DNA from: Tubulanus polymorphus
Lineage: Eukaryota > Animalia > Nemertea
Reading direction: 5' to 3'
Length of the DNA stretch: 64,000 bases
NCBI RefSeq assembly: GCF_964204645.1
Contig: NC_134035.1
Span: forward strand, 10,200,451 to 10,264,450
The position numbers and the translations under genes are program-made. Of this stretch, positions 1-64,000 are shown in pieces. A model generated the notes under the pieces. It was not told where the DNA came from, ran no database searches, and worked only from the letters and a program-made list of their open reading frames with translations. Position 1 is the stretch's first letter, and each line of letters opens with the position of its first letter.

Positions 1-99
1 CAGAACTAAGTTGGTGTTAAACTGGTCTTGAATTTTAGGTATGACCGAAAAACTGGGTCCTTTTTGATAGATGCGAGTTATTCCTGAAATCCACTAGAC

Positions 100-178
100 T
101 ATATATATATATACATATATGTATACGTATACGTATACATATACATATATATATATATATATATATATATATATATAT
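100..178. repeat. (TA)n microsatellite with TAC/TACG interruptions
   Basis: Directly visible TA run. Confidence 0.95.
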
Positions 179-1619
179 GAGGGTGGGGTCTAAGGGCCTA
201 ACAATGAACTGTATACATCAATGATGGCCGTGTTTCGTGTGTCACTGATTCAATCAGACGCCAAACGCAGTCAGAAGAATATATCTGATGATTTGGAAAC
301 ATGGAATTCTCCGACGAGACGACGACGACGCCGATGACTGAGGCCTGTGGTCAATCTACAATAATAACAACCTATACTAGACATTAAAGCACGTACTCAC
401 AAATACAAACGCGACTGAGAACACGAATAATTACATTGTAACATAAAACATAACAATCAAGCCGTGATACGTGTGTATGCGCGCGGCGCGAAATTCCATT
501 TCCGTAGAAAACGAAAACGGTAAGTGGTATCCGCGCGCGCTCGCATTCGGATAAAACACCGAGAGACGACAATAGATGAAAATCAACAAACCTTATCAAA
601 AGAACTCAACACCACCATCGGATGATTAAAGCGAAGGAAAATATGTATGCAGAAAAGGTGGTTGCGCCACAAAAACGACCAGATCGGAGATCCAAGAGCT
701 GATTGTTTTCAATCGAAGTTACAGGGTCTTGAAACTGCCAGCAACGCGGGTCTTCACAAGTCGCAACCGACATAACCTGCTTTTGTGACTGACTGACCAC
801 GTCTTGCAAGTCGACCCACGCCCAACTTTACTCTTTCCAACTACTTAACTGCCTTCTTGAAGAAAAGTGAAAGAATTGAAGTACAATCAACAGTTCTGAA
901 TTCAACTTCCGCGTTAAAAAATAATCAGTTCATTTTCAAATACAAATTCTATTTCAAATTCACACGCAAATCCTGGAGGGTGAGTTGGGCTTGTTATGAT
1001 AAATTCCACAATTCTAGCTAGTTCAGACAACGGCATTTACTCGCGTTACCACCGATCAAATAAGCTTGTCAGAAATTGAAAATATCTAACATTAAAATAA
1101 CCAGCCAGCCATGAGGTTTTTTAATCACAGATATATACAGTACCGACGATATGATATGCGCACATCAAGCTCGCCGGTTCAATGCAGGAAATTAAGACAG
1201 CAAACAATGGCGCCATTGTCATGCAAATATGTAATTATTACTGTTCAATGGTACAGCAGCAGAATCTAAGAAATGAATAAATACATTTCATATCACGAAT
1301 ATACACGTACGCGCACCACATATCAGATACAGCGGGAAATACTGAAAATTATTCAATTCCACGCAGAAACAAGCAATCAGTTTTCACAGCGAGACTGATT
1401 CTTATTACATAAGGTCAAAAGGCCGATACATTTTGACATTCATCACCCATCAGGAATCCACTATTTAGATCAGCTATTATTCAGATTGTTCGGAATTGAT
1501 GAAATTAATTCAGTTTTATGAAAAATATGGAAACAATGTATTTTACAAAGTTTTGCATATAGGTGGACCATGAATGACCCAGATTAGATCAAAATCTGGA
1601 TTACACCGATCTGAATTAA

Positions 1620-1983
1620 AGCCGCGGACACACTGGGCGATTTCGTCGCCGATTTTATGACCGATTTGATCGCCGACAGACCCGGACACACTGGGCGATT
1701 TCGTCGGCGACGAAATCGGCGAACAGCGCCGCTTATTTTGAAACGACCAGCTGCTAGCGCCACCTTTAATAAATCAAAGAGCCGTGATTGGCTGGTTAAT
1801 ATGGCGCTCGAGGCGACTGATCGCCGTACCCGGACACACTGGGCGATTCTGTCGCCGGCGACAGAATCCAACATGTTGGATTCGGGCGGCCGACTAAATC
1901 ACCGAAGGCGATTGCCCGGACACACTGGGCGATTTTACCGGCAATTTCGTCGGGCGACGAAATCGCCCAGTGTGTCTGGGCCT
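1620..1983. mobile_element. PIF/Harbinger-like MITE, TAA target-site duplication
   Basis: Left end AGCCGCGGACACACTGGGCGATTTCGTCGCC and right end GGCGACGAAATCGCCCAGTGTGTCTGGGCCT are ~31-bp TIRs. TAA lies on both sides (1617-1619, 1984-1986). The motif CGGACACACTGGGCGATT is repeated internally. AG..CT ends with a TWA TSD fit PIF/Harbinger. Confidence 0.8.
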
Positions 1984-2020
1984 TAAGCGGGTTTGAATGT
2001 ATTTTGGATCAACTATCCAA

Positions 2021-2150
2021 AGCCGCGATCACATGAGCGTTTTTGGCTCGGGCCAAATTTGGCCCGGACAACTGTTCACACTGGTGCCAAATGGGCCGGG
2101 CCAAATTTGGCCTGGGCAAAAACATCGAATCAGGCCAGAGCCAGATTTTA
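2021..2150. mobile_element. MITE family A fragment (AGCCGCGATCACA termini, GGCCAAATTTGGCCC subrepeats)
   Basis: Same terminus and palindromic subrepeats recur at ~4015-4246, 5078-5160, 8091-8318, 8345-8440, 16277, 17060-17185, 43848-43900, 46978-47070, 52250-52290 and 54468-54612. Confidence 0.8.
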
Positions 2151-3088
2151 GTTACCTTCACTATGATGGAACACTTAGTACAGTTGAAATTAGAAGACCG
2201 CAAATAACAATGGATGGCATTCAAGTTTTTTCATCATGACATTCAACTTTTTACATCATGCTACTTCTCAATATCTTTTGTTAGAAAGAAAGTTTTTATT
2301 TGCGGTAGTTTTTCTATCTAAGCCCCGAGAGCCCGGCTTTCATCGGTTTTTTTTTAAACGTTTCATTGATGAAATGATAATACCACGCGCATTACGGCAT
2401 AGTACGTAGGGGGAGGGAGGGGGGGTTAGAGATTAGATACTATAAAAGCCATTTTACGGTCGCCAGTCGCCGTGGCGCACAACATCATCGATGATGATTA
2501 TAAGTCAAAAGTTAAGTATAAGTTTACCGAACAAAAAAACAACAGCGCTCGCCGGATTAAGCGACAACTCATCTTTCAACCGTAGAGTCGTAGAACAATG
2601 CATTATACAGCGTACTCGTCGGCAAGGTTGTGCTCTTGCTATCGGGGATTATAACCGGGTACTGCCGTCATCCCCGAGCTGTAGTACTTATAGTTGTAGT
2701 CGCCGTAGTAAAAATCACTTTCAACGGATATCGACGAATTATAGTAACGCGAGCCCGTATTCTGTCGTCGTCGTTTTTTTTCCTTTCGTTTACTAACTGA
2801 TGATAGCACTTACGAAAACGTGATTTTTCTACTCGGCGGATTAACCGTTACTTAATCTACGATATGCCCCGCACATTTTCATCTTTACGATAATCGGAAT
2901 CTTGTAATTGTTTCTGCTTTCGAAAAAATGAACGCTTCGGATTTTCAAGTTTAAGCTTACGTAAGTAATTCAAGCTTAACGATAGTATGCTCGATGATGG
3001 CTATTCGATATTGGCCTAAACGTCACATCTTACAGAACATTTCGCCTTTTTCGCTGGGATTAATATCGTAAGATCTTCTGCTTATCCA

Positions 3089-61308: not shown

Positions 61309-61322
61309 GTTGCCATGGCAAC
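61309..61322. promoter_or_regulatory. Perfect palindromic RFX X-box GTTGCCATGGCAAC
   Basis: Exact 14-bp consensus at the edge of a CpG-rich block. Confidence 0.55.
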
Positions 61323-62819
61323 AAAATCTTTCAACTATACTTTAAATTTCATCGATTAGAATCGTACGCGAATCGAACGGATACTACGCGCGAATCGGTC
61401 GCCGAGAATACGTAATAAAACCGGTACCGGTACCGGTGGCGCGCTCTACGCACGGATTTGCGAAATTCAACCCCCCTCCCCGCGTCGCACAGGGATTGAC
61501 TCCCCGTGTATATGACGTTCACCGATGATGATCGATACGCGCATCTTACTACGACTACTTACGCATCTAGGTAACGCGCAGCTCAATTCGGTCGCTTTTT
61601 ACTCGACGCGGTAACAAATTACCCGCTATTATTGACATTGTCCACTCTCTCTCTCTCCCTCGGCCGCAACGAGATAAACGCTTCAGTCTTATGTAGATTT
61701 CTCAATAAATGGCAGCAACTATCTCACAAACAATATATACAGGAAAAAATACAGCTTTTAGTTTCAGGCATTCGTGATACATACAGACTACTGGTTTCAC
61801 CTCAACGCTTTGACCTTACAATTGAAAGCCACTTTATACGAATTCAAAAGATTACAGGAAAAAATGAAATCAAATTTTCAATCAAGAAAATGAAAGACAG
61901 AACATTTCGAACTCTCTCTAGCGATCATTTTATGTATTTCTTAACACCTGTCAAGAAGTCAGAAATGTTGTTAGTTTTAATTTTTTGATTTGATAAAAAA
62001 ATTTCATTTTTAACCTTTGAAGTTTGTAGACAGTCACTGTTTATTTTATCATTTATTCTCCACGTATGAGTGCGGCTATCCCACTACTTACACTTTGTGC
62101 CACTGTTGTCTAAAGTAAAGTTTAGATAATCGGAAATGGCCTAATTTCAACTCAATTAAACTCGACTCCGTAACTGCGAAATTGGCGCAATCTTCAAGAT
62201 TGAAGTATACAATATTCAACATTCATTTATTCATAGATTGAAATTGGGGAATGCTGATTTTTGAAATAAGGGGCTTCAATCGACTGAGTTCGTCGCTGCG
62301 CGCGCGAGCGCCGTTTTAAGTAGAGAATCAAATACTGCGAATAGCGAAATTACGAGTAGTCATATAATAAAAAGCATGTTTGAATATTGTGCCAAACGGG
62401 GGAAAATCCTGATATATGGTTTTACCGAGAGTCTCTTCGCCGACGATATATAAAGCACTTATGCCGACTGACGAAACGAGATTGAAAAGAAATTAAATTT
62501 TCAAGATGCCAAGCGCGCGGAGATTTATTTCAATCTCGGCAGCCGGCTTATTACTAATGGTATATGGATTTACTTCCAATCGGAAATCGAAAATATAACC
62601 AGAAAACCTGGGCAGAGTGAGACGAGAGAGGGAGAGAAAAAAAAGACTGTAGATGAATGACTTCAAGCTGCGCACATGTTCTTAATGTACGCAGCGATCT
62701 TAACACGAAGGCAGGTAGTACTGAGTGGGTTAACGCACTTAACTTGAAATTATAAATTTGTTATTTTCAGATAAAATCAATTTTCCAATACACATATCCG
62801 GCTTATCCATACACATAAG

Positions 62820-62920
62820 TATATATATATATATATATATATATATATATATATATATATATATATATATATATATATATATATATATATATATATATAT
62901 ATATATATATATCTATATCT
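62820..62920. repeat. (TA)n microsatellite
   Basis: Directly visible. Confidence 0.95.
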
Positions 62921-63754
62921 ATTGAAATCTCAAAATCGAAACCTGATATATTGAAATCTCAAAATCGAAACCTGATGAAAGATATTTTCAAAATCATTCT
63001 GAACTTAGGACAATTTGTTTGATAATCCATTCTGAATCGATCAGTATTGCGCATATCTTTTTCCTGAAAATAAATATCACCATTTCGCTATTTTGCGATA
63101 TGCGCAATTATAAACGCGATGGTGTCGTAGTCGTAAACGCAGAGCTGCCAGTCGACGACAATAACTGGACGCAGCGTAGACAAATGAAACGACGCATTAA
63201 AATCAATTTACGGCGATATTAGTAAGTGTCGCAAATCCAATTGCAAACACATAAAACGATAAACGAAATATTTTGCGCCGCGCAATTTAGCCGCGGTAAC
63301 ATTAGTCGATAATGTAATAAGTAATAAGTAACGCAAGCTCGGGCATAGTGTACGGGGTAGTTAGTACAGCCGGCAGGTGTTTGAATATCTCCATACGGCA
63401 CCCGAACGAACGTTTGAATTTCCAATCGAAAAATATGCATCAGACGCACGAATAGCAGAAAAACCGTCGACTTTAATAACAATCGCAAAGAAAAACGACG
63501 ACATTGTTTGCTTCCCTCCCGTCCCGAATGCCGTGCGCGCGCGTCGCGAAATTACGCGTTCAAACATATCCGAAAAGCGACCAGGAAAAAAAAAACGATA
63601 TAGTTGTACGAAATATCTATCGTCACGAGATAGATAATAATTTCGCGAATTTTCGTCGCCGAATTATTCGGCAAATAGACGCGGCATTTCGAAACGCGGC
63701 GTTACTGTCGTAGTTAGCGCATACAATAATGTGTCGTCGTCGTCGCACACTTAC

Positions 63755-63805
63755 CCGAGATCAACGCTGATGCAATATTTAGCTATGTAAATAATCCGAC
63801 GCGAC
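63755..63805 (-). other. Candidate 51-nt exon
   Basis: Minus strand reads ttttttttctaaattcacctcccgcAG|GTCGCG...GATCTCGG|GTaagt. It has a branch-like CTAA, a pyrimidine tract, a consensus donor and a length divisible by 3. One frame is open (SRRIIYIAKYCISVDL). Confidence 0.5.
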
Positions 63806-64000
63806 CTGCGGGAGGTGAATTTAGAAAAAAAAAACCGTATGTCTCACACGCAATGATTCCGAGGAGGACTTCCAACGAGACTACCTTATGTATATATACA
63901 GGAAACTTATCGATCAATTTTTCGAGTTGAAAATATCCCTAATCAGGTACGAATCAAGTGCAATTAATTGAATTGCCGAGCTTGTGATGTACGTAAGATG

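Follow-up and report, generated by a model that had tools for sequence, protein, structure and literature searches.

The CpG islands of vertebrates have an observed-to-expected CpG ratio (o/e) near 1 in a background of about 0.2. In the honeybee, the o/e is far above 1 (~1.7) throughout intronic and intergenic DNA, with GpC near 1 (1.03), and the methylated housekeeping exons are CpG-poor; the cause of this excess has been stated to be unclear (Wallberg et al. 2015, PMC4406589). In annelids (Owenia, Capitella), DNMT1, DNMT3 and TET are accompanied by mosaic methylation (of gene bodies and TEs) and a mild decay of CpG in repeats (PMC11292947, PMC10658182), and methylation of intronic transposable elements (TEs) occurs in Owenia (PMC11292947). 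The locus described here, the window, is the whole stretch of 64,000 nucleotides at positions 10200451-10264450 of contig NC_134035.1 (G000:C11:10200451-10264450) in the 268-Mb assembly of the nemertean Tubulanus polymorphus. In it, CpG-dense blocks (islets, or peaks) alternate with CpG-poorer blocks (spacers, or troughs) at a preferred spacing of about 1.1–1.2 kb.

The locus resembles the honeybee in its high non-coding CpG o/e (1.9 in the islets), a GpC o/e close to 1 and the presence of methylation machinery. It differs from the honeybee in that the surplus is cut into islets of ~0.45 kb with a preferred spacing, that the housekeeping exons have much CpG, and that the pull toward CpG does not look transition-biased and comes without a general bias toward G and C (GC bias) at silent sites. 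Like vertebrate CpG islands, the islets are CpG-dense, repeat-poor blocks of several hundred bases near a putative transcription-factor gene, and CXXC proteins are present in the genome; the silent sites of the neighbouring C2H2 zinc-finger gene are loaded with CpG, as is the coding sequence of vertebrate transcription-factor genes (Branciamore 2010, as cited in PMC12050414). In contrast to vertebrate islands, the islets are AT-rich, have an o/e above 1 in a background of 0.8, and return at kilobase intervals along more than 180 kb. They extend over at least 200 bp with an o/e above 0.6, as CpG islands do, but their GC content (~0.445) is below 50% and the background (o/e 0.75–0.8) is not strongly depleted. 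Compared with the mosaic methylation of invertebrates, the scale is ~1 kb and not that of a gene, the housekeeping exons tested are undepleted, and the surplus lies in the peaks. The large non-coding domain and its many single-copy blocks, poor in insertions and situated beside a C2H2 zinc-finger gene, are also reminiscent of the genomic regulatory blocks with conserved non-coding elements that surround developmental genes (PMC5585340). Since the locus departs from each of the honeybee, vertebrate-island and annelid types in some defining feature, the islets are regarded as a variant of CpG-dense islands and as a member of none of these types. The analysis shows a statistically significant and replicated spacing and gives evidence of a CpG-specific pull that is also seen at silent sites. 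Within an incomplete coverage of the literature, neither a CpG rhythm of kilobase scale in any invertebrate nor a methylome of a nemertean was found.

All statistics are based on 264 kb (the window and 100 kb on each side) plus twelve 3-kb loci. In the window, the overall CpG o/e is 1.36, and the variance/mean of CpG counts per 200 bp is 5.2, compared with 2.2 for GpC. A two-state hidden Markov model (HMM) yields 55 CpG-rich blocks, the centres of which are on average 1.17 kb apart (coefficient of variation 0.49). This overdispersion and the HMM bear out the alternation of CpG-dense and CpG-poorer blocks that had been proposed in a sequence-only reading of the window, the example counts of which are exact: 24 CpG in 34381-34560, inside the CpG-rich block at 34251-34650, and 1 CpG in 34681-34980, inside the CpG-poor block at 34650-35400. 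The islets have a CpG o/e of 1.88, a GpC o/e of 1.10, a GC content of ~0.445–0.447 and a length of ~0.45 kb. The spacers have a CpG o/e of 0.75 (0.81 outside repeats), a GC content of 0.369 and a length of ~0.7 kb; the earlier description of them as nearly lacking CpG is too strong, values near zero being found in only a few 200-bp bins.

The CpG-poor state occupies 58% of the window, yet carries 89% of the recognised repeat bases, as had been supposed, and interspersed repeats cover 1.8% of the islets versus 13.5% of the spacers. The islets tested by whole-genome search are single copy. The troughs carry old repeats (~70–90% identity) that occupy only part of their length; in the CpG-poor example above, an old repeat of ~220 bp at 34720-34940 is represented by at least 39 copies (71–91% identity), and the remainder has no match. 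The loss of CpG reaches only ~150 bp from repeat edges. These repeat figures come from self-comparison of the 264 kb and a few genome searches, by which old debris is under-counted. Microsatellite slippage is a minor source of CpG, 16% of the islet CpGs lying within short tandem units. An identity of the islets as coding exons, transfer RNAs (tRNAs) or known RNAs finds no support: in the 64-kb window, the searches for tRNAs and for Rfam families gave no match, and none of the open reading frames (ORFs) is convincing.

In the window, Markov nulls with two or three states are surpassed both in the power at 1.0–1.3 kb and in the autocorrelation rebound (p ≤ 0.0025). With the 1.0–1.3 kb band fixed beforehand, the signal is replicated in 122 kb of flanks (left, p 0.002–0.015; right, p ≤ 0.0025; pooled, p ≤ 0.0025), the limits of which (-60 and +126 kb) were chosen by eye, with satellites, genes and a Polinton-like element left out. 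The banded non-coding domain includes the whole window (1-64000) and extends ~60 kb leftward and ~60 kb rightward. In the non-repeat DNA of 186 kb, the CpG pair correlation is 0.92 at 640–720 bp, rises to 1.10–1.12 at 1100–1240 bp, and is back down to 0.95 at 1520 bp. About half of the peak-to-peak distances (71/141) are between 0.9 and 1.35 kb. In hidden semi-Markov fits, block lengths with a shape of 2–3 are favoured over geometric ones by ~20 log-likelihood units. The autocorrelation check that had been suggested thus gives a peak above memoryless block models in the window and in the pooled flanks, and the ripple weakens but remains after local repeat masking, by which a tandem-repeat artefact is rejected. 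An oscillation in GC content is also rejected, because GC, GpC and 14 other dinucleotides display no clear 1.1-kb peak. Regularity had been thought to be clearest at 33–45 kb, where the autocorrelation at 1.1–1.2 kb is in fact only 0.04–0.07 and three of the listed centres (36.7, 40.5 and 41.7 kb) are either weak or uncalled; the similar spacing proposed at 17–28 and 54–63 kb is present and stronger (0.17 and 0.19).

The explanation first offered for this spacing was a germline methylation or chromatin lattice of 5–7 nucleosomes per period, in which methylated, TE-accepting domains are interleaved with protected spacers. In its favour are the reality of the 1.1–1.2 kb spacing and, in the left flank and the window, a second and a third bump of the autocorrelation, but there is no phase memory. 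When whole cycles (trough to trough) are permuted, the signal is kept (most p 0.09–0.8, with one ratio statistic at p 0.008); therefore, the order is a short-range one arising from two typical block lengths and not from a phased lattice. Successive spacings are uncorrelated (lag-1 r -0.05), and the period differs between neighbouring regions (~1.1, 1.15–1.2 and ~1.3 kb). Cycle permutation is preferred as the fairer test, the small p values from permuting raw HMM segments being distrusted because short spurious segments distort that null. Nor is there a nucleosome-scale ripple: within islets, the CpG pair correlation stays level between 40 and 600 bp, and no more than a 2% bump of AA/TT was noted near 160–180 bp. 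Compensation of long islets by short spacers to give a constant period is not significant (r -0.15, p 0.16), and a negative relation between the lengths of repeat and non-repeat DNA in the spacers emerges only on truncation. The preferred spacing of ~1.1–1.2 kb is genuine, and it is not a fixed lattice.

Repeats might by themselves give rise to such a pattern, if the old genome drifts to an o/e near 2 and the spacers are younger, CpG-poor transposon debris of a typical size, with neither a local force nor a regulated spacing at work. Every trough in 17.2–23.15 kb contains a repeat piece, 68% of the spacers contain a locally recognised repeat, and old repeats of 70–80% identity are found in troughs that seemed unique in local comparison. 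Moreover, the housekeeping exons are also CpG-rich (o/e 1.43 in DNMT1 and 1.53 in an HPS5-like gene, the only two examined), and removing the recognised repeats lowers the autocorrelation rebound from 0.124 to ~0.08. The rebound is little changed when repeats are exchanged among their own real sites, but it is halved (0.064 versus 0.124, p 0.0025) when the real repeats are re-inserted at random CpG-matched sites, a null that may be weakened by the independent movement of pieces of one element. A shuffled TE-insertion model with near-fixed-size inserts in an exponentially spaced host also under-predicts the peak (p 0.002–0.016 over 186 kb). Less than half of the spacer length is taken up by recognised repeats, repeat copies drift overall toward an o/e of ~0.9 and not 2, the fate of their CpGs tracks the neighbours within 300 bp, and the strength of the CpG pull varies about five-fold from gene to gene. 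Repeats contribute to the banding, but random insertion does not explain it, and debris accumulation without a local force is considered unlikely as the whole cause.

The dinucleotide composition indicates that the banding contrast is a CpG surplus in the peaks and not a deamination scar in the troughs. An index of TpG/CpA relative to ApG/CpT/GpG/CpC stands at 1.18 for the peaks and at 1.15 for the troughs, a ratio of 0.97 (bootstrap confidence interval 0.93–1.01), so that there is no surplus of TpG/CpA in the troughs relative to the peaks. Simulated mosaics with realistic peaks and extra deamination in the troughs give ratios of 1.39, 1.10 and 1.08, while a model with a CpG force in the peaks and equal mild deamination everywhere (M2) gives 0.99 and matches most of the dinucleotide profile. 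A methylation contrast alone (M4) gives an o/e of 1.0 in peaks and 0.32 in troughs, compared with the observed 1.9 and 0.8. Since M4 tops out at an o/e of 1.0, protection from methylation alone is unable to supply the surplus.

Methylation of some kind is nevertheless probable in this genome. Domain matches to DNMT1, the ADD domain of DNMT3, TET and five CXXC are present in the genome, as domains and not as modelled full genes. In repeat copies, the CpG transition rate is 0.150, as opposed to 0.067 for other C/G (~2.2-fold), with the majority consensuses of short repeats of non-viral kind as the reference and an approximate polarity. Within families, CpG loss is 0.195 for copies with CpG-poor flanks versus 0.101 for those with CpG-rich flanks, and the gain of CpG from TpG is 0.090 beside CpG-rich flanks versus 0.051 beside CpG-poor ones; by copy-level permutation, this flank effect has p ~0.01–0.05 within 300 bp and is not significant farther away. 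Some local germline methylation is plausible, because repeats lose CpG faster, and more so in CpG-poor surroundings. CpG-depleted housekeeping gene bodies were not found in the two genes tested (DNMT1 and HPS5-like), and such methylation as exists is probably modest.

Variant sites were derived from assembled contigs of three runs over 17200-23150 (5,951 bases). Of the seven single-nucleotide polymorphisms (SNPs) that fall in or at CpG-rich blocks, a tiny sample, five interconvert CpG and TpG/CpA, a share that exceeds the expectation for shielded CpGs (binomial p 0.0004 at 12% and 0.015 at 26%), and so the CpGs in the peaks do not look mutation-immune. The methylation mosaic first proposed has in its favour the methylation toolkit and the decay of CpG in repeats, which is stronger in CpG-poor surroundings, and the intronic TE methylation of Owenia is a precedent (PMC11292947). 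As the cause of the banding it falls short of the observed o/e, predicts a TpG/CpA surplus that the troughs do not have, and sits poorly with the common CpG SNPs in the peaks; with the failure of the phase test, a methylation lattice is judged very unlikely.

The islet/spacer ratios of ApG (0.68), GpG (0.70) and TpG (0.73) are similar, that is, the transversion neighbours of CpG are depleted equally to the transition neighbours. At fourfold sites in the zinc-finger gene, a third base that follows C is G in 106/136 codons (78%, p 1e-15), and one that precedes G is C in 30/42 (71%, p 1e-5), while silent sites without CpG context are near even (20/30/24/26%, with 24% G). The CpG-specific pull at these silent sites is 6- to 11-fold; it is weaker in the HPS5-like exons (odds 1.8–2.0) and absent in the exon of a G-protein-coupled receptor (GPCR), the exons having been analysed singly by reference and not joined into a spliced gene model. 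General GC-biased conversion is rejected by the lack of GC bias at silent sites outside CpG context. Therefore, from composition and codon use, the force appears to be CpG-specific, equal on transition and transversion neighbours, and locus-dependent.

Such a force could be neutral, namely a CpG-biased fixation at open or recombining sites through gene conversion or repair whose bias depends on the neighbouring base, as has been proposed for the honeybee; the islets would then be footprints sized by conversion tracts or by open chromatin, and their CpG would serve no selected function. The honeybee offers the nearest parallel, with similar o/e values (CpG ~1.7 and GpC 1.03, compared with 1.9 and 1.10 here) and with alleles that create CpG being favoured in fixation (PMC4406589). 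The frequency of CpG<->TpG/CpA SNPs in the islets and the commoner TpG>CpG gain in repeat copies beside them are also as expected from such a bias. In the honeybee, however, the bias is stronger for transitions and comes with a general GC bias (PMC4406589), whereas no such GC bias is seen here and the neighbours of CpG are depleted evenly. As to a transition-biased fixation of the honeybee type, the composition and codon data look even-handed, and the variant data amount to 15 SNPs. Neutral biased fixation is, on the whole, an improbable source of the islets.

The account preferred here, which falls a little short of an even chance of being right, is that the islets are constrained regulatory modules that retain CpG by selection and the spacers are the insertion-tolerant remainder. 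The islets, of ~0.3–0.6 kb, would be old, single-copy and insertion-resistant, and probably are cis-regulatory modules in the large upstream region of the zinc-finger gene. A CpG-specific force on them would lift CpG ~3.5-fold in odds, at a cost spread evenly over all remaining XpG and CpX pairs. This force would most likely be a selective retention of CpG density for readers of the CXXC or Polycomb type, as in the vertebrate islands that cover developmental genes; the CpG-rich coding sequence of vertebrate developmental regulators has likewise been ascribed to selection (Branciamore 2010, as cited in PMC12050414). The spacers, of ~0.4–0.9 kb, would be free of this force, accept insertions, gather transposon and minisatellite debris, and undergo mild CpG decay. 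The preferred spacing would arise from a characteristic length in each block type, the two lengths summing to about 1.15 kb and giving a damped autocorrelation ripple without phase memory. What we infer in this account is the regulatory function, the action of selection, the identity of the readers, and how far either block type is methylated.

Several points weigh against selected regulatory modules. Common developmental transcription-factor motifs are not enriched in the islets, and the lower SNP density of the islets is not significant (6/4621 versus 10/4149, p 0.32). Selection is not separable from biased fixation at the level of the sequence alone. The composition was modelled by simple simulations at equilibrium, for which the TpA term was set by choice, and the unrecognised debris in the spacers may be much greater than counted. 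In addition, even the best-fit Erlang models under-predict the 1.0–1.3 kb peak, and the block lengths are therefore tighter than the fit. A stricter form, in which the worm's non-coding genome is built of CpG-island-like chromatin units that hardly vary in size (an islet and its spacer together spanning about six nucleosomes), with a CpG density selected as in the Polycomb/CXXC islands of vertebrates, no hypermethylated background and a spacing that is maintained despite insertions, seems quite improbable.

The features of the window illustrate both block types. An islet pair (16451-17500, comprising 16451-17100 and 17201-17500; HMM) is followed by a CpG-poor spacer at 17550-18400 with a ~300-bp repeat (17718-18017) that has a second copy at 23978-24291. 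After the islet at 18401-18700 (HMM), the spacer at 18700-19450 contains a short element near 19002-19044, with a contig depth more than 1000-fold that of single copy, and further repeat pieces. The islet at 19451-20000 has no genome match, and CpG transition SNPs are located at 19431, 19490 and 19618; the islet at 20651-21150 has SNPs at 20835 (CG>CC) and 20902 (CA>CG). In the spacer at 21150-21700, the recognisable repeat amounts to only ~70 bp (21269-21342). The islet at 21701-22450 is followed by a repeat-filled dip at ~22400-22630 and a long islet at 22601-23650 with up to 35 CpG per 200 bp. In the runs X2 and X3, from another sample, contigs are 4–8x deeper at 21755-22360 and 22770-22970 than in the rest of 17.2–23.15 kb; these depth peaks could be due to transcripts, open chromatin or restriction-site density, and the patchy coverage of X2 and X3 matches neither the blocks nor restriction sites.

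The densest islet is at 31501-32400 (46 CpG in 31801-32000). It is followed at 32489-33219 by an interspersed element that lacks CpG and encloses a tandem array of a 56-bp unit (32557-33122), the copy number of which varies; dozens of genome copies, with 86–91% identity, are found on many chromosomes. Farther along are a CpG-rich islet at 35401-35850 (HMM), a 29-bp minisatellite (tandem repeat) within a spacer at 37361-37680, and a long CpG-poor stretch at 39450-42150, which includes the weak centres at 40.5 and 41.7 kb and old repeat families at ~39650-39780, 40010-40140 and 41005-41290. Long islets are found at 42201-43400 (HMM), 47601-49750 (the longest, 2.15 kb) and 52351-53800 (1.45 kb), the latter two being single copy in genome search. 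The most regular run is at 58051-63900, with islet starts at 58051, 59001, 60101, 61251, 62251 and 63051. Long GA-rich purine tracts lie at 4786-4895, 10005-10207, 15294-15467, 49712-50059 and 60568-60768, every one of these on the + strand and several in or beside islets.

The window lies 61–125 kb upstream of two exons of the C2H2 zinc-finger gene, which is on the minus strand at ~-64.2 to -60.8 kb (L014:5817-7142, 8013-9218). Few relatives of this gene were found (best identity 36%), and its first Atlas match is a hunchback-named cluster with a weak recognition score. In the comparison across species, the one homolog contig matched in coding sequence only. The window had been placed within an intron, which is not confirmed, the sole hint being an A>T skew on the + strand, consistent from -80 to +120 kb, that hints at minus-strand transcription across this range. 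At -100 to -75 kb (L011-L013) there are large composite satellites, one with a 237-bp unit and one with nested 76/524/1418-bp units (CpG o/e ~0.55 for the latter), adjoined by a rhodopsin-family GPCR ORF.

On the right, the exons at ~+116 to +124 kb (L026:1885-9570, minus strand), which we take to resemble HPS5 and which have no Pfam support, are CpG-rich in adjoining DNA that is CpG-poor. Two long ORFs on the minus strand (L027:8292-9035 and L028:335-1840) presumably resemble a cysteine-cluster/KDZ-type transposase region; the one that was scanned has no Pfam match. They are accompanied by a tandem cluster of four acyl-CoA thioesterase/BAAT-like genes at ~+140 to +148 kb (L028:5965 to L029:4136), which look intronless and share ~85% DNA identity, a thioesterase exon there being 100% identical to an NCBI protein of T. 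polymorphus, and by a Polinton/Maverick-like element at ~+149 to +164 kb (L029:5193 to L030:10000; GC 22–29%) with a Pfam integrase with chromodomain and ORFs that we presume to resemble polymerase B and capsid.

The significance of the banding is tempered by the absence of a true lattice and by a cause that is drawn from sequence alone. The locus offers an internal CpG contrast every kilobase, together with silent sites under a 6- to 11-fold pull. If the long reads of the assembly retain kinetic data, 5-methylcytosine may be read from existing data and the question becomes directly testable. The finding bears on the origin of CpG islands, in that it asks whether island-like elements exist outside hypermethylated genomes.

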